A stretch of 64,000 bases of DNA. Source: Lepidodermella squamata. Its lineage: Eukaryota > Animalia > Gastrotricha. The stretch covers positions 62,001-126,000 of the forward strand of contig JBLDXI010000007.1 in NCBI GenBank assembly GCA_047495785.1. The letters run 5' to 3'. Positions 2,850 to 59,046 of the stretch are shown here, one piece after another. The notes under the pieces are model-generated. The model had not been told where the DNA came from. It was given only the letters and a program-made list of their open reading frames with translations, and ran no database searches. A program made the translations under genes and the position numbers. Position 1 is the first letter of the stretch; the number at the start of each line of letters is the position of its first letter.

Positions 2850-5707
2850 ATGTATGACGACAACCCGCAGTTCGGCACTCTCTATGCCACCAAAACAACA
2901 TCCACCCTAATACATAGCCAAACCGGCGGCACATTAGGCCTTCTTCCCAGCCACCTTAACGGTCTGTCGCTCTCGCCGCCCTGCCTTCCTCGTCATCACA
3001 TTACTGCAAAAACGCTGCCTGTTGCTATTAATAATGGGCACAACCACCAGCAGCAGCATCATCTGCTGAGCGAACTAGCTGAAAAGCAGCAGCAACAGCA
3101 ACAACACAGCAGTCTCATCTCGCCGACTGCTTACACCTCGAACTCTCAGGACAAGTATCGATTCTTCTCGACAACTACCATGAACGACCCGGCTATGCCA
3201 ATGATCGATCAAAAGTCCGGCTCAACATCGTCTTCCAGCGGCCAATCTTCGCCAAACGGCTACGTTACGCCCAGTAACAACGCCACATTACGCCTTAACC
3301 AGCCTCTGCCACCGGTTACGAGTCCGGACCTTAATTTACTGAAACGGATCTCGCCGGAGAAGCTGAAATTTATGCTAGCGCCGTCAGAGTTATACGCGCC
3401 CGACCGGCCGTTTCTCTTTGGCGCCCTTATTTGCTTACGTTTATTCGAAAAACCGGCTCAAATTTTTGACGACGTTTGCGCCGAGTGCTTCCGCCGTCAG
3501 ATCGCCATCGAAGCGAGCACATCGCCTCGAAAAGCCGATTTGCTGCATGCATTTTCCTCGCACGTCGTCCTGCTGCTAAGCGACTGGACCGATCTATTGC
3601 CGGCGGATTTCAGCGACGATGCCGCTATGGGTCGGCTTCGCGTTATCCTCGAGCGAATCTGCTTGCCGAACCCGAGTCTCAAGCGCAACGTGTTATTGCT
3701 GGTGAAAAACTTGACGATTAAGCTGGAGAGGACGCGGCGGTTGACGGAACAGCTGAGTCGGCTCGAGGCCGAACGGGTTCGTCGTCTCGTTGCCGGGGCA
3801 ACAGCGCCACAGGCCGCGTCAGCCTCGGATATTTTCTCGGCTTGCCCTGATCCGAACGCAGTCGCGCGGCAGTTGACGCGGGTTGAGCTGGATTGGTTGC
3901 AACGCATCGAACCTTCAGACGTGATCGATTCATTCCTTCTTTCACAATCCTCGAAACAACGCTCCGGCGGTTCAGTATCATCCATGTCATCGAATGGACA
4001 AAGCTCCTCGGCATCAACTCGTAATTTTTTTCACGAAATATTCCAGGAATTATAACACGAATTTTTCATTCCAGTGAAAAGTTGTTCTGCCCTCAAAGCT
4101 TATGTCGACTGGTTTAATCGGCTCAGTTATCTCGTCGCCTCGGAAATATGCCTGGTAAGTAATTGAACCCAGCTTAAATCCGCTTTTAGAAGAACACCCT
4201 GGAATTTATACTCGGTAGTTGTCCACCTTAAAACGCGCATTTTTGACAAGTGCACGACGTTTTTTTGTTATTTACAACGTAGTTGAAATCATCTTCTTGA
4301 TGTGCCTCGTGATATTATCACAACTTTAGTTTTTACTTCGGCAATCATGTTTAATTTTAATTGTAAATGCTGTGCTGTCCACAATATTTTTAGGGTCGAA
4401 ACGGACGGGTAAGCATTTGACGATTTCCGATTCAGTTTTACCGAGAGAATAGAACCTCTAGTTGACTTCGTGCTTGTGTTTATCATCGACCGTGTTTTTT
4501 GTGCCCCTCATCATTCAAACCTCATCATGTTTTTAAACTGACAAACAATTTTTTCGAACCAAAATTCGCTTGATGAAGCTTGATTTTGCGACAATTAATA
4601 ACATAGCGGGAATTCAAAGACATGATATATTTTTTAACTACACCGCGATGTAGTTTTTACCACCCACCGTTTTTCTTAGCGAGTGTTTTTATTGCACGCA
4701 GAATTAATATTTTCAGTTGTTCCGCATGAATGACCCTTCTTTTGTCGTTTCGAGTGTCATATTATTATTGAATTGCATGCGAGATTTCATACTATTCGAT
4801 TAGCAGACCCAGATTCCAAGGCGTCCCAAGTTTTACGTGTCGTACCCTCCATTTCTCTATAGTGAAATTCTGCTGCTGCTTCTGGTAAACAACATCCTCG
4901 TAGTCCCTGGGACCGCGTCCTCATTTTATTTCCGATAGAAAATTTTTATTAAATAATATCGCCGAGCGAAAATGTAATTACGTTGTTGTTATTTTGCAGC
5001 ATCTGAAAAAGAAAAACCGCGCCCGGATTATCGATTACTTCATCGATGTGGCACGCGAGTGCCTCAACCTCGGTAACTTCAACTCGCCGATGGCCATTAT
5101 CGGCGGCCTTAATTTGCCGCAAATTCAACGCCTAAAGCGAACGTGGGCTCTTGTCGACCGTGAGAAATTCTCCGTTCTCGAGACACTGACCGGTCCTGAG
5201 AATAATTTCGCCTCGTATCGATCGACGCTCAAGGCTGCTCAATGGCGGTCGTCGCGGGGCCAGGGCCGTGTCGTAATCCCGTTTTTCAGCCTATTCATCC
5301 GTGATTTGATCTACTTCTGGGAACGGTGCTCTGAGTCGCTTAGCGGCGAATCGTCTCCCACTTCGGCGTGTTCGGTCGCCAGTTCTCAGCAGCCGAGTGG
5401 GAACAGCAGCCAAAATAATTCACCCGCATTGAGAACCCCGACCGAGCCGTCGAATTCAAATTTAAAACCTAGGCCGAGTTTTGTTGATTTCGACCGATTT
5501 CTGCCGCTTGTTAAACACGTTGAACAGCTGCACGGTTGGAAGGGCGTTGACTGCCCGTTTGCCGCGAATGATTCGGTCGCTAGTTACCTACTTGCGACAC
5601 CCGTGTTGACAGACGACAGCTTATTCCTGGCATCTTATGCCTGCGAGTCGCCTGATTCTCAGCACGAAAAGGAGAGATGTAAAAGCCTCAAGTCGCAAAT
5701 TTCGTGA
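2850..5707 (+). CDS. RASGEF1: Ras-GEF domain protein, RasGEF1 family (REM + CDC25 domain); 3 exons ~2850-4020, 4075-4154, 5000-5707
   Basis: Spliced frame gives ARQLTRVELDWL...AYVDWFNRLSYLVASEICLHLKKKNRARIIDYFIDVARECLNLGNFNS..., VVIPFFSLFIRDLIYF and C-terminal LFLASYACESPD, typical of RasGEF1A/B/C. The start may be at 2850 or a downstream Met. Confidence 0.88.
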
Positions 5708-7488
5708 AAAATATCTCCAATATCTCGCCTATTTTGTTTACTCTGACTTGAAATTTTATGATTGTTACTATATGTTATATATATATAGTCTATCTGCAGC
5801 ATAATATTATATAGTAGAGCTCGAGTTTTCAATACAAATATTTTCTCATAATTTGACATTGAGAACAAAAATTTACAACGAATTGATTATAAATATCTTT
5901 GTTTTTTTTTCGATTTTCTTTTGATTTTGATACAACTATGACACGCGTCTTCCGTTGCTGGCCAAAAATTGCGACAAAAGCTTCTTTTTAACCGGCGGGC
6001 TTGTCAAATGATTTGCGCGCGCTCGCTTCCATGATGATGATGATGATATCACGTCATATTGTTAAGTTTGATCTTTTTGCGTTTTTTTCATGAAAATTTT
6101 ATTTGCGTATGTTGACAACTTTTGTGTTGACACTGCTCAATCCTTTCGAGTCGTACTTTGAGCGTACTTTGTTTTCTTGGTCTCTACGCAAGAAAGCGAT
6201 GACCTCACTTCCTGCATCTCTCTCTCTCTGTCTCACTTCAATGCTGTTTACTTAATCAACTGCCAATTTTGATTTCAAATAATTAATTATAACAATATCA
6301 CTGAAATTAGATCGATATTGATGTTGATGAAAAAGACTTATGATTGCTTATAGAAAATGCTACTGATTTTTGAAAAAAAAACCACGGGAACGTGCAGTTG
6401 TCACCGATTTGGATGATCGATGGAAGGAATGAAACAATAAAAATGTGTTGTTACTTGGTAATTTGTTGTTCGAAAACACTCGGGGTTCCAGGGTATTGAT
6501 TTGAGATGCACGCTAGAAAAAATTGCGCAACTGAATTATTTGGTTATTTTTATGAAAAGAACATAAAAACCAGTATCCGCTATTGCGTAAAAGCCTCAAA
6601 GCGTGCATCAAATTCGTTCAAATATCGAGGAATTCCATGGTCGCCATGGTCGGGCATCGAAGTTTCAGAGATTTTGCTCTCCGTTTAAGGATTCATAGAA
6701 CGAGCGAGGAAAAGAAACGCCTCATGCCGTTTGTTCCAGGGTGAGTTTTTCCAAAGCATTCAATGTGTTTTCCGATTCTTTTCCAATTTTTAATTTCAAT
6801 GAAAATAAAATGTACGGAATTGGTGCTGTTTCAAGTCGTGCCGATAATTGCACACAATCCAGAGCTTCAAAAAGCACCCGCTGAATGCCCGTTTTTATCT
6901 TTATGCCGTGCGGTATAGCGGTAATAGCTGTGAACTTTCAACAGTAGGTTGAAATTGGGCTTTCGCAGAATTTGGAAACTTGGATCAATCAATAGACAAA
7001 TTTGCTTGATCGCAAATGACTTGAGTAATCCATGGTGGCTTGACAGTGGAGCCACAAGTCCTAATGACCAATCTGGTTCTCGGGAAAGCGTATATCTTTC
7101 ATCCTAATATTGTTGTCACCTGCTATTTTGAACATTGAACATGGTAACAAAAATGGTGAGGGTAAGACGACGTAATCGTAATCGTTTTCAAAGCTTTTTA
7201 TTCAAGAACCAACCGATGGCACAATGTTATTTTCGTTCATCATACTAGAATAGGATTAGAAAGTAGTAGAATAGAAACGTCTATAGTAAATAAGAAATGA
7301 TTTATCATCGATTTTCGTACCGAGACAAAATTTACACGTGGCAGTGGCTTAAATATAAGATCAATCAAGAGTATCATCCTACATTTTTCAAGTATTACTT
7401 TAAAGAGAGTAAATAATTATAATATCGCTAATTACAATGATTATGCTTTATTTATCGCGAGAGAGGAACCGTACAGTTTTCAAATTGT

Positions 7489-8632
7489 CTATATCTGCCC
7501 ACCAGCGTTCGAAAATTGGGCGATACCACCGATTTGGGGCGAGGTCTGGGGAACCATCGCGGGTTGGTACATGGCCGAGCAGAGGCGAGTGCTGCAGCAT
7601 CGGATCTGAGAAAAAACGATATAGGTACTCATCTTTCACGATTAAAAGCATTTCATACCGTCGAGAGAGCGTTGGGGTCGACCCAGTAACGAGTGCCGGA
7701 GCAGAAGACAAGGAGGCCTTGAGCGGCTGGCACCTGAGACTGAACTTCAGGGGTGCGCTGAGGAACGATGCCCTGGGTAGTGCAGTTTTCGGTGTTGTAG
7801 TTGTACAGATCCTGGCCGCAGCAGCCCCAGGTGAGGGTGGCACCCGACGCCAGAACGTAGCGGTAGTTGCCGCAAACGGCGTAGACTGAGCCGTAGGGGA
7901 GAGATGGTTGAGAAGGTTGCGGCAGAGATTGAATCTGGTAAAGGAAATCAGTCGTAAAATACTGCATTTTCTTCACGCTTCTAGATAATTTACCTGGCCA
8001 TCCATGCACTGCTGGATCGAGGGGTCGTAGACGTCGAAGTTGCAGCACCGGTAGGTCTCGGCAGCGACGTACAGGTAACCACCGCAGTTGAGGCGAGCAA
8101 GGCGGGTGGTGGCTGATCCGATGGGGCCAGTTGCGGTCAGGGGGACAATCATGCCCTGGTCGCATTTCTGGTAGCGGCGATCGTAGGCACCATCACCACA
8201 GCACTCGAAGTTGTTGTACGGGTCAGCGTAGACGCCAGCGCCGCAGCAGTCGAATCCAGACGGGCACGCGCTCCAGTTAGCAGCCAGAGGGCCGTAAACG
8301 TTGGGCAGCGACGAGGTCGACAGCGGGATGTTCACAGCGGGCTGCTGGGGTTGCGCGGGTGGCTGGACAACAACCGGGGGCACGAAGTTGGTCTGACGAG
8401 GCGCTGGGTTATTGTTGGCAGCCGCTGGCTGATTTGTGTTCATGCCCGAGAGAAACCGGCTGATGAAGTCGGGAAGCTGTTGGCCCGAGGCATCCATCGG
8501 CATCCCTATTTACAGAAAAACTAAGACTGATATACAGCTGGAAATCGATTTCAACTAACCTGGGTTCTGGGGGCCCTGGTTCTGAGCGAAAGCTGCTCCG
8601 AACAACACGACAATAGTTGCCGAGAACAGCAT
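7489..8632 (-). CDS. Secreted galaxin-like di-cysteine repeat protein (4 coding exons)
   Basis: Signal peptide MLFSATIVVLFGAAFA, then a Q/P/N-rich segment, then about 4 repeats of the type CG..Y.....CC....YD....C (e.g. CCGDGAYDRRYQKC, CGGYLY..YRCCNFDVYDPSIQQC). The last exon reads IRCCSTRLC...GGQI*. Joined by GT-AG introns. Confidence 0.7.
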
Positions 8633-9807
8633 GATTATAGATGTTATAATATTGATTTCGCTAAAAGGTTAGAAATACGTTAAATATACGCTCACAAATT
8701 GTAAGTTGGGAAAAAAACACGACTGAGAGTATAGCAGGTAAAAAGTGCGACTGAAAGACGCGACCGAGCCTTTGCCGCTCGAGTGTTCTGTCCAACGGGT
8801 GACCAATCCAAAAAACTGAACTCAACTGTTCGGTTGGCCGGCTTTTATAGACGTCGAGAATAATACTGCCGGCGCGTGTTTCGTGTTTTTGCGGCGCTCA
8901 CGGTATCTTTATAGCCGTCGAAGTTGATGATACGGTGTGCAGTGATGTGTCGAATGAGCGCGACAACATTTGTCGAGGCGGCGACCGCCGGCCATTTGTG
9001 CAAATTCTTGTTTTTTCTGACCGCCAGTTTTATTGTTATACAGCCGGTGGTCATGCGCGTATCTGCGCGCGCAAAAACCGGGCCTTTTTTCACGCGCATC
9101 GCGATGATGTTATTACATAGGTGTTACATTTTACGTGAAGCCTAGATTAATGGCCGCGATATATTGACTAACAAGTGTTTAATTACTCGGGTGATGGATG
9201 ATGATACATATCTCTGTATTGCCAGCAGCCGGCGGCTCGTGCGTTTCGGCGAATGGCCGCTAGGTGTTTTTACAAGTTGCTGGCTTTTACACAATACCTA
9301 CTGCTGTAGCCGAAATCACACCTCCTCGACGACAAAAGCTCGCGAGCCGGCTCGAGACAGGCAAAACCACAGAGGGGAAAAAAAACGAATTTTTATGTAG
9401 CTGAAGCACGCGAGGTAATTTATTTTACTCCCACGAAGGCGGCTCGAGATTTTAGGCCGAATATCGCCAATATGCACGCATATCCAGGGTTTTATTCTTA
9501 TTTCTCATGCATGTCCTTTGCTACAAAAAAAACAGGTGCGAAATCTCAACAAAAATAACGCAACCTAAGCGGAACCGTGTCACAGCCTTCTTAGTGTGTA
9601 AAATGTTTGTGTCCATGGGAATTAAGTTGTCCGCATATTTGCTTTGTGTTCATTATTCTCGAAAAAATCTCACCAGAAAAAACTAGGCGACCCGCCGAAG
9701 GAGGACGAAATTAAACAATAGCAACATTAATAGCCACTGTACGAGTACACTTTGGACAATCCTTTGGTTATTGAAGGCTGAGAAGCTGAGCTTCGCGGAA
9801 AATTACA

Positions 9808-9832
9808 GTGGATCGAAGCAGCGCTCTGTTAA
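9808..9832 (+). pseudogene. Degenerate 3' half (T-arm/B-box and acceptor strand) of initiator tRNA-Met
   Basis: GTGGATCGAAGCAGCGCTCTGTTAA matches the intact tRNA-iMet 3' end plus 1 nt of flank (GTAGATCGAAACTACGCTCTGCTAA, ~55122-55146) at 20/25. It is followed by a T-run and lies at essentially the same distance from U1. Confidence 0.65.
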
Positions 9833-9869
9833 CAATTTTTTGCATTCCGTTTTTTTTTGACAGAAGTTG

Positions 9870-9947
9870 GTGAATATGCTAATGAAACATGCGTTATATC
9901 AGGTCATGACTTGAAAATGCGCATGGAAGAATAAAATCTATTCAACT
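9870..9947 (+). promoter_or_regulatory. Putative U1 snRNA promoter (octamer-like box at -72, PSE-like box at -39)
   Basis: GTGAATATGC(T/A)AAT.AAA, ACTTGA(A/G)AATGCG.AT and AAAATCTATTCAACT are conserved at identical offsets upstream of both U1 copies, while the intervening DNA differs. Confidence 0.65.
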
Positions 9948-10107
9948 AAACTTACCTGGCACTGGGATGAACCGAGATCATGAAGTCGGTCGCCCCAGGG
10001 CGAGGCGGGCCATTGCACTTCGGTCCGCTGACCCCTGCGCTCTGCCTCATCGGTGGAGTCGGGTGCAAAATATTTCACTTGGGTATCGGCGTTCGCGCCA
10101 CACCCGT
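9948..10107 (+). ncRNA. RNU1: U1 spliceosomal snRNA, copy 1
   Basis: 5' AAACTTACCTGG; SL1 loop GATCATGAAG (U1-70K site); CCCCAGGGCGAGG; SL2 loop ATTGCAC (U1A site); GCTGACCCCTGCG; terminal stem with GCGTTCGCGC; ~160 nt. Confidence 0.96.
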
Positions 10108-10751
10108 AATTCGAAAAATAAAACCCCACTTTTTAATCATTTGAAGGTGAATCCTCGCGCTACATCATGATTTCAATTACATATCAATTTGGTTTCGAGA
10201 CAATATACACGTTTTCAACTTGGCCGACTGGGCCGCTTTATATCAGAGCACATTATTTGTTTCCAAGTGGAATTTTTTCAGAGGCTTAATATATACGAGC
10301 TAATAATGGATCATGCCGGCCAATTACTGAGGAGCGTCACTTTGGCGCCATCTTTCTTATTGAAACAGGCGACAATTCCGGCACGAAGATAATCGATAAT
10401 GCTCACTTTCTCATCAGTCAGCGACCAGAGTTTATATTTTAAGTAGTATAGTAAAAAATCGGGTTTCCACCAGCCGACTTGTAGTAAAAACATCAGAATT
10501 ATCTGAAAATATGTCAACTTGTCTCGCATTACCGGCTTACAAATTGAATTTATTGACACAATTGGCAGTGTTTGTGCGAGTGGCAAGTTTCAAGAAAGTC
10601 GACGACACTGATCACTCAGAGGCGTACTACTACGCGCGGCATATCCGCTACGACGATGAAAGCAACCAGCCGATCGACGATATTTTCAGATCTTGTTGGT
10701 ACGACTTTGAGACCGTAATAAATGGTATTACCCTTCATATCCTCGCTAAAA

Positions 10752-12833
10752 ATGATGGCGAATATTTCTCTCTTACTTTTTATTTTGATTCGCCCGATCT
10801 CGCCACATAAATTCAACGACGTTGACGAACCATCAGAACCGGACTGGTATTCGATGAACAGAGTTCAGCCTCCGATAGAGCCGACTGATGAACAGCGGCT
10901 CACTGACTATTTAATGACGAATTATTCGGCAATAAGTCGGCCGGTTCTTTATGCCAATGAATCGCTGACTGTGATGGCTCGTATTTACCTAATGAAAATT
11001 CTCGACCTCGTCGAACGTGAACAGATTCTTCACATCGTTCTTAGATTTCAGCTGGTAACTATTTATTTTTTATCGAAAAAATTAACAACGATTAATTTAG
11101 GGCTGGACAGATCCGATGCTGACTTGGGACCCATCAGAGTTTGGTAATTTGTCTGCGTTAGTTTTGCCTGGGGACACGCTATGGATCCCGGATATTCAAA
11201 CTGGCAACTCCGCTGGTGATCGATACGGCCTGCTTCGAAATCGAGCCTACCCTTTCAAGATACATTCAGATGGCTCGGTAATCCCCTTCTCGAAGCCTCA
11301 TAAGGTTGTTAAATCCTGAATATTTTCAAGGTTTGGTGGCATCCAACTGGCAGTGTTTTCACTCGCTGCTCGCTCGATTTGTTATGGTTCCCATTCGATG
11401 TTCAAAGATGCCCGCTAGTTCTCGAATCGGCGATGCAACCCCAGTCAGCAGTCAATCTAACCATTCGGAAAAATAAAGAAAGTGTCTTGCTAACAATGTT
11501 CACAGAGAATAGTAAGTTCCTAATATGTTAGGATTGTAATATAGGATTTAACGTTTCGCAGGTTTGTGGGATCTTATTGGGACGTCTTCAACTTCGTACT
11601 ACTACAAAAGCTCATCAGCAGCAAGCGCCAGAATTGGAAACTCGAAAGATATCAAGTTCGAAAATAATTACACACGAGCTGTTTTTTGGTTGAAGCTTCG
11701 TCGGAAAACCAACTACTACAAAGTTTGAATAGGGATTATAGTTACCATTCAGTTTTATTCTCATCATTTACGTTATAGTTAAACGTGCTATATCCGTGCT
11801 TCATGTTGAGTTCAATGCAGCTGTTGACATTTCTGCTACCGCTTCAAAGGTGAGGTTGAAAAGATTTAATATTTTTATCAATAATTCCAATTTCTTCAAG
11901 TTTAACTCGAGTCCCTCAGGCGACGACTATCTTGCTTTCTGTGATCATCTTTCAAGCAGTAATTGTCAATGAGTTGCCAAAGTCTTCAGGTTAATAGCAA
12001 TTTTAACCTAAAAAATCAATTTTTTTAAACGAATGCAATTATTAGATACCATTTCTTTAATATCGATCTACACGACGTTGATGATAGGCGTCTCAGTTAT
12101 AGCAATTGTCGAGTCGGTTTTCGTCGCGAATATCCTCTCGCGCAATTTTGGCCCGATATCGCTTTCACGACGCATTGCACTACTCCTAAGGTAAACTTGA
12201 AGCATTTCAGGACTTTTTCTCTCCTGTTTTTTTTTAGATTTTTCTTGAAAGAGCCGCCCAGTATGAAAGAAAGACAAGTAGAAATTAATGGAGCATCCGA
12301 TAGCCCGGCTATCAACCGGCACACCGGCTCGATCAGGATAGTGCGAACCCAGCAACGGCCAACGTTGGAGAGCGTGTTCGAAGAGACAGCGGTTGATCAC
12401 GTGACCAGCCGAAGCGTGCATCCTGTCATCGGCCTCCCAGCTATCACGATTCCCAAGCATCAACGCCGGCCTCCTAGTGCCCCTAGGCAAAGTGAACATA
12501 GACACCTGTTCAAGCGCGAATCCTCAATAGATGAGGGCAATGAAGTCAGGGATCAGCCCTTCACGGATTACGTCGCTTCAACAGGGCGGCGGGGACAGGT
12601 ATGTTCTCAAACTCGTTGAATAAGCTTATTCTATCTCCGACTTGTTTACCTAGGTTCCAGCAGTAGTTAACTGGGAAAGAATTGCTTTCATCATCAATAT
12701 GACGGTAATTCCTATATTGACTGAAAATTAGATAATTAAATAATTTCAAATGTCTTTACAGTGCTTCTTCCTTTGCGTTCTCTGGATAATGATAATTCCA
12801 TTGGCTGTTATTTTGGTGACACCGACTGAGTAA
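10752..12833 (+). CDS. Cys-loop ligand-gated ion channel subunit, nAChR-like non-alpha, divergent (~9 exons)
   Basis: EQRLTDYLMTNY..SRPV, W.DP.LTWDP, LWIPDI, Cys-loop CSLDLLWFPFDVQRC, LRRK before M1, four TM helices and a large M3-M4 loop. No vicinal cysteines in loop C. The start codon is uncertain. Confidence 0.88.
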
Positions 12834-13258: not shown

Positions 13259-15291
13259 ATGAGTAGAAAATCAACTCGGGAATTGCCTCCTGAACCTCTG
13301 CAGAAGGTGTATTCCCGGGAAGTTCCGCCTGTCCCTGTGCAGAAGGTGCATTCTCGAGAATTGCCCCCGGAACCTGTGCAGAAGGTTCATTCTCGGGAAG
13401 TGCCGTCTGTACCGTTGCAGAAAATGTATTCACGAGAATTGCCACCTGAACCTTTGCAGAAGGTGTATTCTCGAGAAGCACCACATGTACCGCTGCAGAA
13501 GGTGCCGAGCAGACCTCAGCCTTCAGCCCCAACATTGCAGCCGGAGTTTTTCGAGATAACAGAGCGGCCGAGTTCTACGAGCAGTCACCACCACCATCGC
13601 CGTCATCAACGTATTTCTCCAACACCTTCAGGTCAAAGCCGAAATCAATCAGGAATCAGCCAGCGACCCGTCCCGCCAATACCATCTTCAGGCAGTGGTA
13701 AAAGCAAGAAAACCGAGAAGCCATCTCTCGGCCGGTGCTGCTGTCGGGCTTTCATCGTCATTTTCCTCATACTCGGCCTTGCTATGGCCATTGTTGGCAT
13801 TATACTAGCCATCCACTACCGAACGATCTTCATTCGATTACTTAAAAAGGAGTTGCCTGTGGTTAGCGGCTCGCAAAGTTTGGCCCAGTTACAAGAGCCA
13901 ACGACAACCGTATTCAAGTTTTACATGTTCAACTTGACTAACTCTGCGGATGTGGAGAGAGATGGCGTCAAACCAAGCTTCGAGCAAATTGGACCATATT
14001 GCTACAGGATGACTGAAATTAGGGAAGATTTCTCCTTCAGCCATGACGAGACAGATCTGGCATATTCACGGCGGCAATATTACAAATTCGCGCCGGATTT
14101 ATCAGTTGGAAGCGAGAAAGACACTGTCATTTCGCTAGACTTTGTCGCATATGCTGGATTGACCGGGTCAAACGACAGAGGAATGGGTGCTATTGGGGAG
14201 TCATTGCTGGAGCAGCAAAACCGAAGCTCTCCTTTTCGAAGCTATAAGATTGGCGATTTACTCTGGGGCGCCGATGATTCGTTTTACTCGTTACTGTTAA
14301 GCGTTGCCGAAACTTACGGCGCATCTCCGAAAAAGGCCCCGGAAAAATTCGGTTTCATGTTCGGACGAAACGGGACTATTATCTCAAACGTAACTTTCTA
14401 CACTGGTAAGGATGACATGGATCGTTACATGAAGTTGAAAAACTTGAATGGCCACGAGGGGAAGCTGGACAATATCTGGCCGATTGTCAAAGTACCGGAA
14501 ACCTATGATGCCAACATTTTCACCGGCGTAGTTAGCGGTTCATTCCAGCCTGATGTTTTGAGGAGTTCAATCATTCAACCTCACGTGAATGACTTATGCA
14601 TGTCGCTGGTGATGGATTATTGGACGATGGAAATGGTGGGCGAGTTCGAGGTGCTTCGATTCGGGGTTGATTACCGGCTTTTCAAACGGTTGTCTTACCA
14701 TCTCAACCAAGCTCAATGCGCGCCAGAGTATCGCAATAATAATGAGAAATGCGCGACATTTGGCGTTTTGAATGTCACGAAGTGTCGAGATAACCTACCG
14801 GTCATCATTTCCTGGCCGCATTTTTACGAGGGTGACGCTTATTACCTGGAACTGGTCGAAGGACTGCGACCTCTGGAACGCGATCATGCCCCATATCTCG
14901 ACGTTGATCCACTTACAGGCAAAGCAATCCGAGCGGCGGAACGGGCCCAGATCAATTTACCACTGTACAAACTGCCCTATGCTGGGTATGGTAACCTGCA
15001 AAACTTTACACTGTTCCCGGTTATGTGGATCGAGCAATCTGCGGAAATAACGCAAGCGGGCATGGAAAAGCTAAAAACTGCAGTATACAACAGATTTTAC
15101 TCACTGAGATCGCTGGCTTACGGACTTCTGATCACGAGCGTCATCTTGCTGCCGATCGCTGTTGTCGTCGTTGTTGTATTTCATTGTTACGGTAAGTTCC
15201 CGAGTAGTTTCAAAAATAATTTAAAAAAAAAATAATTATATTTCCAGAAAAAGGAAGATGCGCTTGTCTCACAGATGACATGTCTACGTGA
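13259..15291 (+). CDS. CD36/SCARB (scavenger receptor class B) family protein 1 with long repeat-bearing N-terminal tail
   Basis: N-terminal TM, FYMFNLTN, EQIGPYCY, PVIISWPHFYEGD, LDVDPLTG, FPVMWIE, C-terminal TM. One intron at ~15192-15247; last exon EKGRCACLTDDMST*. Confidence 0.93.
13271..13510 (+). repeat. Six 39-bp (13-aa) coding tandem repeats, consensus SRE(L/V)PP(E/V)P(L/V)QKV(Y/H)
   Basis: Directly visible in the translation and in the DNA (recurring GCAGAAGGT...TC.CG.GAA). Confidence 0.92.
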
Positions 15292-19000: not shown

Positions 19001-20924
19001 CTAAGGCGCGATTTCAACGCGGTGTGTTTGCGAACGTGGCGCTCAGCAGCACTTTTTTAGGGAATCGCTCGTTCATTGTGCACATTGTTTATTGTTACCG
19101 CGGTTTGACTTGTTCGTCGGCAGACGTCTAATGTGACGTCAAATAACGTGTTGGTGTAAATAAACAGTAGTGGCGTAATGGCAGGGTGGTGCTGCTGCTG
19201 GGTGGCGGCGCCGAGAGGCTTGGTGACACTGTAGTTGACAAACGACACACGGTGGCGCGCACAATTTGACGACTGATGATACTACATTTATTAGTGGCAG
19301 CGCCCTTATTAGCCGGCCTAGTCTCTCAGCAGCGCAGTAGCTATCTATTTACTGCTGGCGCGTTGTGTGGTGGCTCGTTTCTTCGTCTCTTTGTCGCCGC
19401 CGCAGATAATCATTCGGGAAGAGACAATTCCGCTTCCATATTGCGCGCGCGCGTACACAGTATCGCATGTCGCTCGCCTCGTCAAGAGTTCGATCCTACA
19501 CGAACGACAGCAGTAAAGGCAGTTCTGTATTATTTGCCCCGAGCTAACATCACAGCATAGTGTAGGCAGTCATGTAATATAGCCGAATTCCAGCCCGCAG
19601 CTTTCAGGTAGGCATCAGCAGCAGCAGCTACTTTTCTTGTGTGCCGGGTGTATAGTCGCTATGATAATAACGATAAACAGCGCGCATACCTAGTGGTATA
19701 GTCCTATAATATATTGTAGTAGTGAAGAAACCAAACCAAACCGTGTTTGCGCGCGCTAGCAGTTGTCCGGGAAAATGGTCGGGCTATTATCGCGCCAATA
19801 ATAATATGTATATTGCTATGATGCGACGCGCCTCAGTTATAGTTACAACGCCAAGTTGGCGATGGCTGTTATCAAAACCGCGAGCTGCTCGCCAACCCAT
19901 CGTACTTATACTCTGTGCTCTTGCGCTATTGACGTCGCGCGGCGCGCATCGTTTTGCGCCAAAAATCAGCGCAATAATGGCCGGTTGAATGCAGGCGCGG
20001 TGCCGCTTCCACTTGCGGCTATTTGCGCTGGCGCTCTTCTAGACACCGACACCCCACTTCTCAACAAAAAGCCGGCCGCGCCACACCGAGAGCGCAGCGC
20101 GTGCCGTAATTATAAATGACTCTGTTATTTTTTCTAGTTCTGCATCACTTATTTGCGTAAACTGAGCTAGCAGCAAATAACACGGCTCATAATACCTGAT
20201 AATTTATTTTGCCCGGCCCTGATTCGAGACGCCAAAAATAATACTCTTGTCTCGGCCACCACAACAACTTCTTGACGCTTCCGCTTCAGCTCGACCATTA
20301 TCAGCAGCAATTTTTTCAATCTCGCCTATCGCGCAAATTTACATCACCACATATCACCTGACAACACCAGGCTTTCGATCGGTTTGATTCACGAAAATGC
20401 TGGGACTTCGTTACTATGATACTAGTTTGATCTTCACACTGCATAAAAGCACAAAGGTTTCACGACGAGGTTTCCGGCGTTAGTCAAGTAATTTTCAACG
20501 CTACATGTGGGTCGCACATTTTAATCAGCGATCATTATCAGAGGGAACATAATGCTTGAAATATGCACTATAACAAATTATAATATCATGCAAAACCTAG
20601 GCAAAAATTAATCAATAACGCGGTACATTTCTCGTTTTTCTGAAGTTCAGATAACGATTTATAAACCGAATTTTTTCATTCGTTTTGGATGACATTCTCG
20701 AAGGTTTTCCATATAATTATTGGGCCTCCAATTATGTGATCCTTTATTGTACATTCACAGCTGAATAATTCATCACATCCTGCAAACTTGCAGCTATGAT
20801 ACAGCGATTATCATCAATATACCGTGTTTTTTTTACCTGCATATATAGGCCTTTTAATAAATTTACTGACAATAGCGCGGTGTTTTCCCCCGCGCAACTA
20901 GACGACATACCTGTGCAGTTTCCG

Positions 20925-22558
20925 ATGGCGGCCAACGCCGGTGAAGCCGAGCAGTTGGGCGAAAAGTCATCCAAGTCTGACCCGCCGATCGGCCGCAACA
21001 TCCGATCCGCGGAGGGCGGCGGCGGCGGCGGGCGGTGTTCTTGTCGACTAATACTTCGCATTGCCATCATCAGCGGCGCAATATTCGCCACAATCGGCCT
21101 TCTTCTCGTCATATTTTACCGCGATTTTTTCCTCGGTCAGGTCAAGGCGCAACTTCCACTCCGCCGCGATTCGCCTAATTTGCCTAAATTCGAACGCCCG
21201 CCAGCCAATGCCAGGGCGTCGTTCTATTTCTTCAATCTAACAAACGCGAAAGACGTCATGGAATACGGCGAGAAGCCTAACCTGCAAGAAATCGGGCCTT
21301 ACGTTTATCGGTTGATTGACACGAAAGAAAACGTCGAATTTTCGAGTGACGAGTCCGAAGTGAGTTATTTAAAACGGAAAAACTACGAGTTCGATCGAGA
21401 TCAATCCGCTGGAGATGAGACTGATACAGTCGTCACGCTTGATTTCGTCGCCTACAGCGGATTCAAAGGCTCTCATGAGAAAGGTCAAACAAGTCTCGGA
21501 TCAGTTTTGCTCGACACCATGGACAGGAAATTGCCATTCAAATCTTATGAGATCAATAGCCTACTATGGGGCAGTCATGATAAGCTCTACAACATCTTCC
21601 TCACCGCTGGGAAGAAAGATAAGGCGCCGATTTTCGGCCTATTCGTTGGCAAGAATGCAACGATCGATGCGAACTTTACTGTTTTCACCGGTCGCGACGA
21701 TATTTCCAAGATTCAGAAGGTGAAAGAATTCAACGGCCAGTCACGCTTGAATGACATCTGGCCATCGCCACTGGATTCTGTCGAGGAATCAGGCGAACCG
21801 TTAGATCCTAATATTATAGCCGGGACCCTGGGTCAAACATTCGCGCCTGATGTCAATTCTGATGCGCCGTTGGTTGTGTTTTCCCACGACGTTTGCCTTA
21901 CAATGAAATTCCACTACCGATACGAAACTTCGGTGCGAGACGCGCAGACATATCGATTCGGCATCGATCACCACGCGCATAAAACTAAAACTCAGGTTAT
22001 CAACAAGGCGCTGTGTGATGCCGAGACATACACCAATCGGCAATGTGCTGGTTTTGGTTTGATCAATGTTACAAGTTGTAAAGACGGCTCGCCAATCATC
22101 ATGTCATGGCCTCATTTTCTCGAAAATGACCCTTACTACTTGGTAATTTTTCCCTCGTTTTTTCTGACTTTCTTAACATGTTTTTATAGACTCTGGTCGA
22201 AGGGTTATCACCATCCGAAGAAAAGCATGGAGCTTTTCTTGACATAGATCCGCTGACTGGCATGACGTTAAATGGAGCGAAACGGGTGCAAATCAACTTC
22301 CCTCTCGTGCCTTTGCCTCATGAGAACTACAAAAACCTGCCGCCATTCACCATGTTTCCTATCCTGTGGATGGAAGAAGCCGCTCAAATATCGGACGACG
22401 GCATGACAGCGCTGAGAACGGCAGTTTATTCCAAGTACCTGCTGCTGCAAAACATCGCCTATGGAACCCTAGTCGCCGGTTTGCTACTGCTCTCCGTCAG
22501 CGTACTCATCTACGCCCTATATGCGATAGCATGCGCGAGCAGACTCGATAGATGGTGA
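20925..22558 (+). CDS. CD36/SCARB family protein 2 (one intron, 22143-22189)
   Basis: TM, FYFFNLTN, LQEIGPYVY, SPIIMSWPHFL, LDIDPLTG, FPILWME, C-terminal TM. Paralogous to the 13259 gene. Confidence 0.93.
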
Positions 22559-32860: not shown

Positions 32861-33524
32861 AATAGAAAACAGGAATTCCGGCCCCTGATATTTCAAGCAA
32901 TTTTTGTAGCTCCTGACCGACTTAATCTTCATGTGATTACAAACTTTAGGATTTTTGAGCTTGACAAATAATTCGATTTTCTACAAGTTGAGAATTGGAT
33001 TCACCAAATAATTTCTTTAGTCATCACTGATTGATCTTACTTGTTCAATGTCTGTTATTTGCTGTAATTTTCCGCGCCACCACTGGTGAAATAGAAATAA
33101 AATCTTGGGTTGTAACTGTTTCTTTTTACTCTATTTGCCGTGAAAAATCTCATGTTAATACCTATTGAAGGAATAATTTAAAATTTAAAGTTCGAAATAG
33201 CTTTTGGCTGAGCGGTTCAAAACCTTCAAAAGTAACTCTCGAAGCCGAACACGTATAAGGCCTCTTGATCAAAAAAGTTGCTGAAGCAAATAATTGCTTT
33301 CTCTGTGGTATCCCAGTATCCTGTGAAGTTGAAACCTTGAGCTCAGTCCTCAACTATAAATACTACCACTCAGCTAATAGCGGGCCATAATAACTCTGCA
33401 GATTTGGTATTCCTATAAATCCTCATTGAATTTCGACTCGGCTATCAATCATAATCTGAATCAGCATACGACTGGCAACGTTTCATTCTACTAATCAGAG
33501 CAAAAAAAAGCAGAATATCTTTTG

Positions 33525-33792
33525 GCGGAACCAAATTTGCCTGTTGCGGAACCAAATTTGACTGGAGCGGAACCAAATCGGCATTTTGCGGAACCTAATT
33601 TTAGGTAAGCAAAAGGCCGCTTTTTGAATATTTCTACGAAATTGAGGCAATGCATGAATTCTAAAGCGAAGAATGCGTCTTTTACAGAATTTTACGTTGA
33701 ATTTATCTCTAATTATGCTGATAAATCATGACAAGCTTGAAAGCCTCGAAAATTGGCTTTAGGCCCATCGAAAATTCCAAAATTTGGTTCCG
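33525..33792. repeat. Four 21-bp-period copies of GCGGAACCAAATT plus one inverted copy
   Basis: Motif starts at 33525, 33546, 33567 and 33588; reverse complement AAATTTGGTTCCGC at ~33779-33792. Confidence 0.8.
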
Positions 33793-34133
33793 CTAAAAGT
33801 AAAACCCCAAAAAGAGTAAGCCGAAAACTAAGCAAGCCAGCATAACAAGCTTCTCTCTTAATCATAGTTATTTTTTATTTCGAGTCATTACATTTTGGGA
33901 GAAGAGATGATGCACTGTCCGGCCGGCGTCTAGCGCGCTTATGAAACCACTGATCAGCGATATAAGGAGCAACAAAAGCGCTTTTGTTTCATCTATCAGT
34001 ATCTCCGATCAACCATCTCCCGCAACGAATGGAGGTGTATCATCACTGGCGCGCTCACACGCGCAACGCCGCGCCGTCTGTGCGCAACCGTAATAAGTAT
34101 CTCACACTTTGAAAAGGCCTCGCAATCGTGGAC

Positions 34134-34167
34134 TATAAATTGAGGTTTATTAACAAACGAGACATTC
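34134..34167 (+). promoter_or_regulatory. TATA box + initiator-like CATTC for astacin C
   Basis: TATAAA at 34134 with CATTC 30 nt downstream. The same arrangement occurs before astacin D (TATAAA 39251, CATTC 39281). Confidence 0.55.
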
Positions 34168-34195
34168 AGAAGAAATTTTCATCGTTTCTTGTTCG

Positions 34196-36965
34196 ATGCG
34201 TTTGCTAGTTGTTATCCTATTCGCTGCATGCAATGTGGCTTGGGCCACTGTTGTTGGCGACCTGCCGTTCGAGGACTCGATCAACACGTTGATGATCATG
34301 AGCCAGGTCTCGCGGCTAATGCTTCAGAAGCATAACATATCCCGGCCGTTTCTCGACCCGGTCGCGCCTGTTTTGCCAACAGAACACCTGCTCGAGGATG
34401 ACATTCGGCTCACCGTCGACCAAGCGAAAATGATCCTGCAAACGATCGAAGAGGAAATGGGCATTCAAAGCGGAATTGCGAAGCGCGTTTCAACCTCAGC
34501 TAAGAAATGGACTTTCCCCATCAAATACGCCTTCGACGGAACTCACAGTAATGTTTTTTCTCTGGAAGATGGTCATCATTAACAATTTCTTTCCAAACTA
34601 TAGGCGATGCTGAGAAAGCAACGATTCGCCAAGGCCTTGCGATGTGGACGTCTACAACCTGCGTTACTTTCCAAGAATCCAGCTCAGCTAGTTCGATTGC
34701 TAACACCCCATCACTAACTTTTAACAAAGGTTCTGGTTGCTGGTCTTATATTGGTTAGTATCACTGCTTTAACTTTTTCTAACAAAAATTTCCTATTTTA
34801 ATATAGGAACCATTTCGTCGAAAACCCAGACGATTTCTCTTGGCAACGGTTGCGTTGTGGTGAGTTTACCTATTTTTGCGATTTATTTTATCGCAGTAAT
34901 TCGGTTTATTTGGATAATAGCCTGGCATTGCTGCACATGAAACTGGTCACGCTCTTGGAATGGTAATTTTTCAAATTAATTTTTTTTTAATTTCATGAAA
35001 TAACTGTTTTTATTTATGTTAGTACCACGAGCAAATGCGAAACGACCGCGACAGCGCCATCAAAGTGAACCTTGGCAACTGCATTTCGTAAGTTTGCTGC
35101 CATTATAGTTCAATTCAAAATTTTATGAATTAATTGCCATTAGGGGTTATGAATCAGCCTTCGCGAAGGTTGCGGCTTCAGAAGACAACAACTACGGCGC
35201 GCCATACGATTTCGAGTCTGTTATGCATTACGATACGCTAGGATTCTCGAACGACTACTGGGGCAAGAAGCGAGTTATCGAGCCCCTCGATGTCAAGTTT
35301 CTTACCGCAATGGGCAATCGCGATTACCTCTCGTTCAACGACATTAAACGCATCAACTACCACTACAACTGCATTGGTAAAAAATTAATTTCAAAATATG
35401 TTTGTTGTAAATTTTTCGAATTTTTATAGCGTCTGCTTGCGGAAGCACGAAGCTGTCTCAGCCTTGCCAAAACGGTGGTTACCAAGACCCGAAGAACTGC
35501 GTGAAATGTCGCTGCCCCAATGGCTGGGGCGGTGACTTCTGCACGATCAATGCCGCTTCGAAGGGCGCTTCTTGCGGTGGTGTCATAACCCTAGCGGCTT
35601 GCTCTCAAACCACCATCACCTCACCGAGTAACCCTTCTAACTACCCGGCTGGATCTAGTTGCTCATGGGTCATCGAAGCTGTAAGTTTCTTCTTGGGCTA
35701 AGCAGTCTAAACAAGTTAATCATTTGTATTACAGCCATCGGGCTCTGGTATTGTCTTCGGCTTCGAAGGTCAGCCGAAAATGCCCTGCAACTATGCCGAT
35801 AGGTGTAATGACTTCGTCGAAATTCGGACAAACAGCAAAGATCCAACTTACAACGGCTACAAGTTTTGTTCTTGTGGCCAAGCTAGCGGCCGCTACGCTA
35901 CTGATGCTAACAAAGCCGTAGTCTACTTTGCCGGTTACGCCACGTCTGGTGCTTCGGGTTTCAAGCTAAACGTCTACGCCACCTGCCCTGGAACTACCGG
36001 GTCTGGCCTGTCCAAGGAATGCGTGATTTCTAGCACGGGCTTCGACTACGCCGGTGATTCGACCAAGGCAAGTAGTGGCCAGTCTTGCTCAGCCTGGTCC
36101 GGCCAGTCGACCTATCCTGCGATTAATTTCCCCGATGGAACTCTGCTGGCGGCTGGGAGTAAGTGCCGCAACCCGGATGCCCGCTCGTCACCCTGGTGCT
36201 ATACGACTAACTATCAAACTACCGGCTCATGCTCCTTCTCGAAGTGCCGTAAGTTTTAGGAGTTTTCTGTTTTCGAAATAACTGGGTTGAATTGAACAGC
36301 GACGGGTACGGTTACTACGACTGCTGCTCCGACTACAACAACAACTAAGGCGGCTACTACGACTACAGGATCGCCAACTACGACCACAACACCGCGGGCT
36401 GCAACTACAACGACAACTACGGCTGCTACGACTCGTGCAGCTACTACTACTACTACGACTGCAGCTACCACAACCCGTGCGCCAACTCAAGCGACAGCTA
36501 GCCCTGCCAAGTGAGTCTAAACATTTCATTATCAGATGTTGGAAACTATCTAATCATTTTTTTATTTGCAGGCCTTCGGGTGATTCCACTAACTGCCGTA
36601 GCACTGTAGACGGACGTAACTACATCGGATCTGTCAGCCGAACGGTTCGAGGCTACACCTGCCAACGCTGGGACAACCAATGGCCACAAACTCATGACTA
36701 CACCGCTGCCACATTCCCCGACTCATCGCTGACCCAGGCTGGCAATGCTTGCCGCAATCCTGACCCGGTCAACTTCCCGAACGGTGTTTGGTGCTTAACG
36801 AACGACCCAGCCGTTCGAACTGATTACTGCAACGTTCCACGCTGCCCAACTTCAGGCCGCAAGCGAACCTGGATCGATAAGCTGATTGAAGAGTACGCTG
36901 ATTTGGCTGAGCGCGAGATGGATGATGGCAATGACGCCTCTTTCAACGATTTTGTGTTCGAATAA
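34196..36965 (+). CDS. Astacin metalloprotease C (2 kringles, long Thr/Ala linker)
   Basis: HETGHALGMYHEQMRNDRD, SVMHY, EGF, CUB, two kringles, tail GRKRTWIDKLIEEYADL...FE*. Confidence 0.92.
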
Positions 36966-53000: not shown

Positions 53001-56000
53001 TTTGACTCGCTGTATTTGAGAGCTTGAACAGTTTTCGCGTGTCGACGGGTGCCACTTGTTAATTTATGTTTCACCGACGTCATCATCACGCCGAATAGTA
53101 AAGGTCGCGCTTGATGAGTAAAACTTTGCACCGCGTTTCATTACAGTTTATTTCGGTGTACCACAATAAATCGCTATTTTTAGGAGAATTTAATTCAAGG
53201 ACGTTATTTATGAAGCGAAATGAGCTGAGGTTTCCTCTCAAATGTCATCAAATCTGTCAATAAATTGATCATCAATCATATTTCTAACGATTTCTGTGGT
53301 TTTACTAATTTGTTTGCGAGAGCGAGTTGGCATTTTCTGGCGATTGTATGCCATAAAACCGTGGCTTATCAGTATTTCATTTCCACGTATTTTTTACGAG
53401 TATATTTTACGACCGTGTGACAAATTACTTTCTCCGCGCCAAAACAGCAGATATCGCATAGCTATGCATTATCATATAGGTATTACGATGTTTTTTACAC
53501 ATCAAACGAGCCGATACGCCAGAAATGTACGATTATTTTATTACGCCGCATGGTTAGCTTAATCGGCCGTGAATCACCCGGTCGCAATTTAGCCGCTGAC
53601 TTTTCTCTTTTTTATTTTTTATTATATCGCCTATCATTAACAGCTGGCCCACTCACTTATTGGATATATAAGCGAAAAGATATAATTGCACTGACCGCGA
53701 ACCAGTTTGAAGTACCTGTGTACATATCGTTTTTTTACTGTGTGAGCGGAAATTTGGGCGAGAATTAATTACTTTCACGCTGAGCTTGCTCTCTTGGAAA
53801 CATCTATTTCTCACAATTGTTTTTTTCTTCTAGTTCAACAGAACAAAATGTCTTTGTTATTACTGAACGACGAACACAACAAGGTGCTAAATGGATCTAT
53901 CAGCTCGTCAGAAACTACTCCAGGTTCTGGAATTACCTGTTTTGGCGAACTCGGAAAGACAGGTGAGAAAAACTTCGATTTAAATTTCCTAATTTCTGTT
54001 TACAATAAAATGTTGAAAAAAACAGCTCAAGCTGGTAGGTTTTCTTGTTATGATGTAAAAGCTAGTAGTAGCCGAATAATGAATCACTTAGTATTGCCCT
54101 GAGCTTTAAAATGCAACTGCCAGTCGGAAAAAAATTAATACACAAGAGACACGTTCCCTTTATGTCCGTCATCGTATTGTCATTATATATTGTGAACTCC
54201 CCTCGCAGCTCGCAGTCATTCCTTTATTCAGACAAAACACATGCATTTTCTTGGCAAATTTTACGATAATGGATTCTGCTTCTTTCATTGCAGTTATGGA
54301 TTGGGCCTTCATGAATCCGTGGATCAGCGTTTTCATCGGCCTAGCTTTCGTCATTCTTTTCCTCGCAATCTCAATGTTGATTCTCAAGTAAGGCTGGACG
54401 AGATGCCTTCAACTCCGAGAACTAATTTATTGCTTTTTAGGTGCATTCTTCGCGCTCGGTTCCACACAATCGGACGTCATACTGGTCAGAAATGTCCGCA
54501 CCACCATTCGATGTCCCACGAGCGTTCGCCCTCGTTCAATGCCGGTACCATCGTTATTGACTCGTCGTGTAATGGCGACGACTGCATTGCGACGAGCGGC
54601 GGCGGTCGCAGCTACCTGACCGCCGAGTCGAAGGTGCCACTCCTCGGCAACGGTAAGCCATCGAACGGTTCGGCAATGCGCCGCGGTCACAGCCATCACA
54701 ATCACCTGGCTGTGATGGTGGGCAGTGAGAACGACGCGAGTTGCGAATCGTCCGGCGGCCGGCACGGTGTGTCGCCCGGGTCGGTCGGCAGCGATGGCGA
54801 GCACTCGTCGTCGTCGGGCGAGCACGCCAGTGGGAAACTCGGCGCCCTGGCCGCGAGCAGCAACAGCACGGCCTCGTCGTCGGCCGGCGCCGTGTCGCTG
54901 ACGGCGCAGCAACGGGTCGGCAGCGTGGGTAACAACAGCGGCGTGCCAACTACATTCCGAACCTTACAAAATCAGCCGAAGCCGCAAGGCCCACCAACGG
55001 CACCCCGCAATACTATGGCGCAGTCGTGGCATGCTCAGCAGGTTAGCTTGTTTTTTCACGTTAATTACTGTCAAGCAGAGTGGCGCAGTGGAAGCGCGCT
55101 GGGCCCATAACCCAGAGGTCTGTAGATCGAAACTACGCTCTGCTAATGACCTAGATTTTTTTTATTGCGCATTGATAATAGTGTGAATATGCAAATTAAA
55201 TGTGAGTCATAGTATTCGATCACTTGAGAATGCGGATACAGGACTAAAATCTATTCAACTAAACTTACCTGGCACTGGGATGAACCGAGATCATGAAGTC
55301 GGTCGCCCCAGGGCGAGGCGGGCCATTGCACTTCGGTCCGCTGACCCCTGCGCTCTGCCTCATCGGTGGAGTCGGGTGCAAAATATTTCACTTGGGTATC
55401 GGCGTTCGCGCCACACCCGTAAATCGAAAAATAAAATTTATATGTTACTTTCATAGGCGAATCCTCGAGCCACGGATGCGACGGTGCTTATAAATGATGG
55501 GTCAAACAATTATCATTTGCCGAACTGCAGTCAGCTGCAAAGCCACGGTTACGTGCCAGACTTACCCCAACCAGCCTACCTGTACGCACTCGCTCAACAA
55601 CAGAACAATAACCAACAAACATTACTAATTCGCCAACAACCACCGCCGCTACCACCGCCTATGAGCGACAGTGACGTGGTGGTGAAACTGCTGCCGGCTC
55701 TATCGGCCGCGTCTTCGCTCGCCGAATTCCTCGGCCACGAAAACGAACACATCGAAGTTGTGCCCGAGGGAGACGAGGACCAACTGTCGGACGAGGACAT
55801 GGACGACGACGACGGGCGGCGGCCGCGAAGTGTTGACAGCGATGACGAGGCGCGCGAGCAACACCGGCAGCGCGACTACGACGCGCCTATCGACGACATC
55901 GACACAGACCCGATCGACTCGATACCGACGTCGAACTCGTTCGGCAACAGCGCCTCACTTCAACCGAACGCGAATTACGTCATGTCTTCCAGTCAAAACA

Positions 56001-57959: not shown

Positions 57960-58672
57960 TTAAATAGCAGTTCCCACCGAGCCAGTTAGTCCACCTGATT
58001 GCGGTTTCTGTTGTTGTTGAGGTTCATTCGAGGTTTCGGTGGACGCAGCCGCCGCCCGGAAGAGGGTCGAAACCAGTTTGGGCTTGAGATAGTCGGTAAT
58101 CGACGCAGTTTTGCTGCCAACAACACATCGAATGTAGCCGTAAAGGTTGGCGCCGCTCATCACAAAGGCGACGACCACCAGTAAGAACCATTTGAAATTG
58201 AAAGTAAAAAACGACCAAATCATGAATAGACTCCAGATCGCTTGCACGGCGAATAAAGACCCCCAAAATATACGTGATTCTGACGGGATAATATCCCTGG
58301 CAGCAGGGCCTTTCTTCGATTCGAACACCCAGTGCGACTGGCCTTCGTCATCGACCTGGTTCCACCACCGGAGACCCGCCAGCAATCGACCGGAGACATT
58401 TTTTACAGTCCAGAAGTCAAGGCAGCCGAGAAATGTGACGAGAACGAAAGAGACAATGAAAGAGTCGGTGAAAAACCGGCAAAACAGATAGGCTAGGATG
58501 GTACCAGATCGAAAGGCGAGGTGAAAAATCATCGCGATAGGGTGTCTAAAATTTGAAATTAGAAGCAACCTTTAATAGCTTTCAGGGCTCACCTTTTGCT
58601 GCGAACCAAGTCCTCCAACTCTGGAGGGGTAACAATGCCAGCTGCTTGGGAGGCTGGGTAGTTCCAACTCAT
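57960..58672 (-). CDS. TVP23: Golgi apparatus membrane protein TVP23/FAM18 (exons 58672-58593, 58545-57960)
   Basis: HP...FHL.FR, DFWTVKNVSGRLLAGLRWWNQVDDEGQSHWVFES, ESRIFW, ANLYGYIRC. Confidence 0.95.
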
Positions 58673-59046
58673 TGCTTAATAGAATATTCTAATCGATAAC
58701 AAAAAACTGTAAATTTACGATAAAAATTGAGACATTTATTTTAGCAATAATTCGTATGTAGTTTCCGTCATGTATAAACAAGTTTACTCTTCGAACAACG
58801 GCCTTATAATATTAAATTAGTGCGCTTTGAATCACGCTTGATTACAAATTGCAATTAAATTATTACAGAAAGCATTTTCTCAGTTTCGTTTTTACAAACC
58901 AAATTAAATTTGACAAAAAGTGAATGAACTGAATGAAATTCCGAAAAAAATCACCAAGCAGCGTAAAATCTGAGAAATCGTCAGCATTTCAATTACGACA
59001 CAATATTATATAGGAATTTCGTGGGTTTCATGTTGTCTCATGCAGT

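Follow-up and report, generated by a model that had tools for sequence, protein, structure and literature searches.

A tRNA-iMet/U1 snRNA gene cassette with a probable 5′ truncation in a gastrotrich genome and the likely origin of its upstream B-box sequence

In a 64-kb stretch of the genome of the gastrotrich Lepidodermella squamata (64,000 nt, hereinafter the window), initiator tRNA-Met (tRNA-iMet) sequence is linked to a U1 snRNA gene at two loci, at one of which, denoted copy 1, only a 25-nt relic of the tRNA gene is present. Copy 1 is probably a 5′-truncated member of a tRNA-iMet/U1 cassette family, with the relic being the leftover end of the tRNA gene, an interpretation to which we assign a probability of about 0.6. 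It builds on the observed anatomy of the two loci, on the statistics of the sequence comparisons and on the conservation across species of an upstream block, box A. The first-pass annotation of this DNA had described a duplicated tRNA-iMet + U1 cassette with a relic at conserved spacing, which holds up, and had further proposed that the B-box of the relic was co-opted for U1 transcription, a proposal that gains no support from three tests: the identity of the relic to the tRNA is in the neutral range, its B-box span has not been preserved better than the remainder, and a related species lacks the motif. The leftover of a gene copy that was cut off thus seems to fit the evidence better than a recruited control element.

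Two U1 snRNA genes and an intact initiator tRNA gene

Both U1 snRNA genes of the window, copy 1 at 9948-10107 and copy 2 at 55261-55420, are located on the plus strand and are identical to each other (160/160). Each is recognized by the Rfam covariance model of U1 (RF00003) with a score of 110 bits, compared to the gathering score of 69.5. Given that the spacer next to them has diverged, this identity points to either gene conversion or strong selection. With an identical sequence and intact promoter blocks (see below), the U1 gene of copy 1 is, by all appearances, maintained.

In copy 2, U1 is preceded by an intact initiator tRNA-Met(CAT) gene (55074-55145, plus strand), which ARAGORN reports as Met(CAT) and which scores 55.2 bits against the Rfam tRNA model. 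Direct reading of the sequence reveals the hallmarks of an initiator, namely the A1:T72 pair, three G:C pairs closing the anticodon stem, A54 and A60. The 3′ end of this tRNA and the start of U1 are 116 coordinates apart, in agreement with the original description of an intact tRNA at 55074 that ends 116 nt before U1. The broader claim that each member of the U1 pair is preceded by tRNA-iMet sequence is likewise borne out by Rfam, ARAGORN and the sequence match described next.

The tRNA relic upstream of copy 1

The relic (9807-9831, plus strand) corresponds to positions 49-73 of the initiator tRNA, that is, the T-arm with the B-box, the 3′ acceptor strand and the discriminator. It is identical to 55121-55145 at 19 of the 25 sites, or at 20 of 25 in the register 9808-9832 that was used in the first-pass annotation, and its end and the start of U1 are 117 coordinates apart, so that the reported match of 20/25 ending 117 nt before U1 stands. 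The relic is not a functional tRNA and cannot make one; between 9650 and 9950, ARAGORN calls no tRNA, and the same holds for Rfam with E values of up to 10. That a match of this kind is a product of chance has nothing in its favor except the shortness of the segment, and the probability of this explanation is negligible. At a fixed position, at least 19 matches out of 25 are expected with a binomial probability of ~1e-7 to 1e-8; the relic is the sole match of at least 18/25, besides the tRNA itself, on both strands of the window (128,000 positions); and it is in register with the flanking conserved blocks. The similarity is far beyond chance and unique in the window, which confirms the observation.

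The A-box half of the tRNA is entirely absent from copy 1. The 47-67 nt upstream of 9807 are as similar to the 5′ part of the tRNA as random segments of the window are (P = 0.5-0.9), which indicates that this part was lost in one event rather than “decayed”, as had been originally stated. A displaced copy of the 5′ half (47 nt) was looked for across the window, and no significant match was obtained, either in the 9.8 kb that precede the relic or elsewhere. Together, these two results imply that homology begins abruptly at tRNA position 49, where the boundary would represent either the breakpoint of a duplication or a deletion that came afterwards.

Two other routes to the same structure appear far less plausible. 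If point mutations had eroded the whole tRNA in situ and had merely progressed further in its 5′ half, the 76% identity over 25 nt would predict ~68-76% over the adjoining 47 nt, which would be easily visible and is absent; MAFFT does put scattered matches between 9770-9806 and the 5′ part of the tRNA, but these are at the chance level given above, and such decay is very improbable. A shade less probable still is the splitting of the tRNA by a mobile element, for example, a Dada transposon targeting tRNA or snRNA genes, with the 5′ half now located farther upstream. Transposons specific for tRNA and U1 genes, such as Dada, do exist (PMC3706591), but the 5′ 47 nt are not found in the window, as already mentioned, and no transposase-like reading frame was found in 8500-9800. 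As a separate observation, the motif AATTAC.GT precedes both the relic and the intact tRNA; a microhomology-mediated deletion was considered on this ground, yet the upstream similarity is not significant (P = 0.22-0.47), and this candidate was rejected.

Conserved blocks around U1 and the probable mode of transcription

Apart from the relic and U1 itself, the two copies share several blocks, all on the plus strand. Box A, the candidate PSE of U1, occupies positions 9870-9887 (-78..-61 relative to U1) and is identical to 55183-55200 at 16 of 18 sites; box B, the second promoter block, is located at 9909-9921 (-39..-27) and is identical to 55222-55234 at 12 of 13 sites; and the proximal block at 9932-9947 (-16..-1) is identical in both copies (55245-55260 in copy 2, in which the promoter region accordingly spans 55183-55260). 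The boxes that had been claimed at -72 and -39 are therefore real, the former coordinate being the middle of box A and the latter the start of box B. Downstream of U1, an A-rich block that is a candidate 3′ box (3′ block 1, 10108-10124, +1..+17) shows 1-2 mismatches in 17 positions to 55421-55437, and the last homologous stretch (3′ block 2, 10145-10163, +38..+56) is identical to 55455-55473 at 16 of 19 sites, such that homology between the copies ends 56 nt past the 3′ end of U1. The stretches between the blocks yield a gapped alignment no better than that of shuffled sequences and are identical at 15 of 30 sites when aligned without gaps.

Between the relic and box A, two T-runs can be directly read in copy 1, T6 at 9836-9841 and T9 at 9850-9858 (plus strand), where copy 2 has the Pol III terminator of its intact tRNA (T8, 55156-55163). 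The spacer segment that comprises these runs (9836-9858) aligns to copy 2 only with gaps, and the alignment is not significant compared to shuffles. A CTATT..ACT motif resembling the proximal block directly precedes U1 in contigs from two public sequencing runs, X2 and X4 (see below).

Within ~35 nt after U1, no T-run of at least four residues is present in copy 2 or in the related species described in the next section. The lack of a consistent T-run and the conservation of an upstream box are both as expected if U1 is a Pol II snRNA gene equipped with a PSE-like promoter and a 3′ box. Thus, U1 is most likely transcribed by RNA polymerase II and most likely runs on its own boxes at -78..-61, -39..-27 and -16..-1, where both the polymerase and the role of each box are what we infer, and the two conserved blocks downstream of U1 probably handle 3′-end formation. 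Metazoan Pol II snRNA promoters include a PSE, which is bound by SNAPc, and a 3′ box. The loci analyzed here resemble such promoters in having a conserved block 60-80 nt upstream and blocks just past the mature 3′ end, but differ in the sequence of the box, GnGAATATnCTAATnA, which is lineage-specific; SNAPc is its putative binding partner.

A related species with U1 among Pol III genes

A protein query with a spurious antisense reading frame that runs across U1 retrieved one relative, P0271, which is present on two metagenome contigs, L004 and L005, each from a different sample. The U1 gene of these contigs is identical to that of the window at 143 of 160 positions, with compensatory changes in stem-loop I, and has the same unusual AAACUUACC 5′ end. 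In both species, U1 starts with AAACUUACCUGG as opposed to the usual AUACUUACCUGG (window 9948-9959; L005 589-600, minus strand). The gene belongs to a tandem unit of ~1.12 kb (L004 1-1263; L005 1-1177), seen in the two metagenome samples, which consists of 7SL RNA, tRNA-Arg(CCG), tRNA-Leu(TAG) and tRNA-Arg(CCT) genes, with U1 on the opposite strand; upstream of U1, there are 131 nt and then the divergent 7SL gene.

Box A is readily recognized in this species, as GGGAATATTCTAATTA at -77..-62 vs GTGAATATGCTAATGA in the window. Box B is not recognizably conserved in L004/L005, and 3′ block 1 is partly conserved. There is no tRNA-iMet upstream of the relative's U1, no relic-like 25-mer in the relative (the best match is 15/25), and no B-box-like 11-mer with up to 2 mismatches on either strand within 260 nt upstream of its U1. 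The first-pass annotation had suggested that the U1 loci of the genome be searched for an upstream tRNA or B-box; when this search is applied to the relative, box A is found and the element is not. It follows that box A, rather than the tRNA B-box, is the conserved U1 promoter element of the lineage. A feature common to both species is the packing of U1 among Pol III genes. Within the 131-nt 7SL/U1 intergenic region of the relative, box A is also located ~55-70 nt from the start of 7SL.

Copy number, linkage and U1 variants

Contigs of four public runs were aligned to copy 2. In run X1, from which this genome probably derives, depth is ~110 in the unique flanks, 5,500-11,600 in the U1 bins and 33,000-36,900 in the tRNA-iMet bins, which amounts, in summed depth over the unique level, to ~50-100x for U1 and ~300x for tRNA-iMet; although depth is not a copy number, these values indicate that both parts of the cassette are highly multicopy. 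They also suggest, with the same proviso, tRNA-iMet and U1 copy numbers that are unusually large for an animal. Over 55172-55233 in the spacer, the alignment, which passes a filter that omits some records, gave zero depth even for the contig of the locus itself. Approximately 4,300-4,500 of the 4,782 depth units of X1 carry C, G and C at positions 55290, 55294 and 55295, respectively. Because most of the U1 depth thus differs from the window at these positions, the U1 type of the window is a minority variant; contigs with the majority letters are also present in the biofilm runs X2 and X3. The three positions fall in the loop of stem-loop I, the binding site of U1-70K. The window type, GAUCAUGAAG (55288-55303 = 9975-9990), appears to resemble the canonical loop more than the majority type does.

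One 309-nt contig from the biofilm metagenome run X2 bears on the linkage of the commoner U1 type. It contains a joint that links 55146 to 55258, has 29 letters on the 3′ end of tRNA-iMet, and reaches 141 nt beyond 55258 in the upstream direction. If these letters are terminal, as is to be expected when a contig enters a repeated gene, tRNA-iMet would end ~112-116 nt before U1, so that this contig is consistent with the same arrangement, which is not to say that it proves it. A metagenome scan for tRNA-iMet followed by U1 at 100-130 nt produced no match, a metagenome scan for the lineage-type U1 pattern likewise produced none, and neither did a search of genome contigs and viral contigs with a 29-nt word from U1 stem-loop II.

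Under the reading preferred here, copy 1 would belong to a multicopy family of cassettes in which tRNA-iMet precedes U1 and would have been truncated at the 5′ end. The linkage of the two genes would reflect the co-amplification of small-RNA genes as one unit.

Genomic setting of the two copies

Copy 2 fills, almost completely, a 415-nt phase-0 intron of a Ser/Gln-rich gene (55042-55456, plus strand), which begins with GT at 55042 and ends with AG at 55455-55456; only its removal brings the flanking exons into one reading frame. Over its first 17 nt (55457-55473, coding for ANPRAT), the exon that follows is homologous to the sequence 3′ of U1 in copy 1 (10145-10163), where the counterpart of the exon start reads VNPRAT and is followed by a stop two codons on. 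There are two options: the cassette gave rise to the exon start and the splice acceptor, or copy 1 was copied from the intronic locus.

Of the relatives found for the HRS gene, the closest, P0001 (62% protein identity), is encoded on contig L001, in which HRS-DUF846 synteny is retained: the HRS and DUF846 (TVP23-like) genes are adjacent both in the window (57960-61134) and on L001 (928-3612). The next-best HRS matches, from molluscs, cladocerans and annelids, are only ~44% identical, which implies that the lineage is poorly sampled. Contig L001 contains no U1, no tRNA and no recognizable host gene of copy 2. The CD36 relative P0121 (44% identity) is found on contigs L002 and L003 among different neighbors, and these contigs contain no U1 and no tRNA either. 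Because these relatives are too distant, L001 and L002/L003 are uninformative with respect to orthologous sites. The window encodes a single-exon CD36-family protein (13259-15235), the N-terminus of which contains five tandem 39-nt (13-residue) repeats (13277-13505), and a second CD36 gene (20796-22247).

Is the relic under selection?

The identity of the relic to the intact tRNA (76-80%) is higher than that of the spacer (~50%), but this comparison is unfair because the intact partner is frozen: its own function keeps the tRNA from changing, and changes therefore accumulate in the relic lineage only. A neutral test was therefore based on 30 non-box spacer sites and the 25 relic sites. The ungapped spacer identity of 15/30 translates into a Jukes-Cantor distance of 0.82 and into a one-lineage neutral expectation of ~68% identity for the relic (49-81% over the confidence range of the spacer). 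The observed values are within this expectation (P = 0.28 for 19/25; P = 0.15 for 20/25); only with the spacer at the low end of its confidence range (33% identity) would the relic look constrained (P = 0.006). A neutral-rate check had been put forward in the first-pass annotation, and its paralogue version, as performed here, lends no support to co-option. The relic can be explained with no excess conservation, although, with so few sites, moderate constraint could be accommodated. We infer that the relic is neutral: the 25 nt are most simply viewed as a leftover, the remaining end of the tRNA gene, which would be preserved to the degree that neutral drift predicts. U1 itself is kept identical and is most likely transcribed by Pol II from the PSE-like box, the second box and the proximal block.

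The principal functional alternative is that the relic is a B-box-only, ETC-like TFIIIC site ~130 nt upstream of U1, kept because the bound factor opens the chromatin, or insulates it, so that SNAPc/Pol II can transcribe this gene. The composition of the relic is suggestive in this respect: all six core B-box residues (G53, T55, C56, G57, A58 and C61) are retained, the A52>G change shifts the sequence toward the consensus, and the B-box-like sequence of the relic, GGATCGAAGCA, has 2 mismatches to the B-box consensus GGTTCGANNCC, one of which is the initiator-specific A54. However, by direct count, positions 52-62, the B-box span, show 3 changes in 11 sites vs 3 in 14 in the remainder, so that conservation is no higher there than in the acceptor strand, and six random changes in 25 sites would spare all six core residues with P = 0.15, which is not significant. 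The relic is the only B-box-like 11-mer (up to 2 mismatches) within 260 nt upstream of either U1 of the window; against this, such 11-mers are expected by chance about once per 64 kb. The spacing to U1 is equal within 1 nt in the two copies, the X2 contig of the commoner U1 type is consistent with it, and in the relative, too, a Pol III gene (7SL) begins ~130 nt upstream of U1; in that species, however, the same box A is present without any B-box-like motif upstream of U1. ETC sites and the boundary functions of TFIIIC are established phenomena (PMC3395662). Weighed together with the neutral range of the relic's identity, these observations make an ETC-like function unlikely.

A looser functional dependence could nevertheless be envisaged, given that U1 is within ~115-135 nt of a Pol III gene in both species. 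In its explicit form, the U1 genes of this lineage would need a TFIIIC-bound Pol III element ~125-150 nt upstream, which would serve SNAPc/Pol II as a distal enhancer or as an insulator. This element would be the co-oriented iMet B-box in the window and the 5′ internal promoter of the divergent 7SL gene in the relative. We consider this scheme slightly more doubtful than an ETC-like site. Were it true, copy 1 would represent a natural minimal version in which the B-box alone is sufficient, and the whole would parallel, in an animal, what is known from trypanosomes.

Comparison with known systems

In trypanosomatids, all snRNAs are Pol III transcripts, the companion tRNA is divergent, and both the A and the B boxes are needed. 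An upstream gene, either a tRNA gene or a tRNA-like one, is required by the snRNA and 7SL genes of these organisms (Nakaar et al., 1994, as summarized in PMC10781861; for gene maps, see PMC2695483), and the upstream element of the Trypanosoma brucei U2 gene is a “tRNA-like region” that retains the A and B boxes (PMC10781861). What the window shares with this system is a U snRNA gene that is preceded, at a distance of ~100 nt, by a tRNA or a tRNA-like remnant. Unlike in trypanosomatids, the tRNA here is co-oriented and the A box is missing from copy 1; U1 possesses a conserved upstream box of its own and lacks a consistent T-run terminator; and the related species has no tRNA-iMet upstream of U1.

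ETC sites are conserved and defined by TFIIIC occupancy, and tRNA genes can function as chromatin boundaries (PMC3395662; reviewed in PMC11346459). The resemblance to these sites consists in an isolated B-box-like sequence that is not part of a complete Pol III gene and is found beside a Pol II-type gene. The differences are that the conservation of the relic does not exceed the neutral expectation and that its occupancy by TFIIIC is hypothetical. On the features compared, namely the A box, the terminator, the U1 gene's own box, conservation and the related species, the locus appears to belong neither to the trypanosomatid type nor to the ETC sites.

A further parallel is offered by linked multigene families of small RNAs. 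In nematodes, crustaceans, molluscs and fishes, 5S rDNA is linked with spliced-leader RNA or U snRNA genes, and the human U1 clusters are interspersed with tRNA genes. On zebrafish chromosome 4, snRNA, tRNA and 5S genes are co-located (PMC10723407). As in these families, different classes of small-RNA genes are amplified as one unit, tRNA-iMet and U1 in the window and 7SL, three tRNAs and U1 in the relative. The cassette differs from them in being a tight unit of ~350 nt, with a fixed tRNA-to-U1 spacing of 115-116 nt, that has been dispersed into an intron. No description of such a tight tRNA-iMet/U1 unit was found in the literature searched, and the same search found no animal Pol II snRNA gene that depends on a Pol III element.

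Implications

If the relic is only a leftover, it is in itself ordinary, a truncated copy within an unusually tight and highly amplified tRNA-iMet/U1 unit. The comparison between the window and the relative yields a candidate U1 promoter element, namely box A (-78..-61), in a lineage of animals that has received little study. Furthermore, copy 1 amounts to a natural deletion experiment, in which U1 is identical and its promoter intact while a functional tRNA gene is lacking, and therefore, precursor transcripts from this copy would tell whether an active upstream tRNA is needed for U1.
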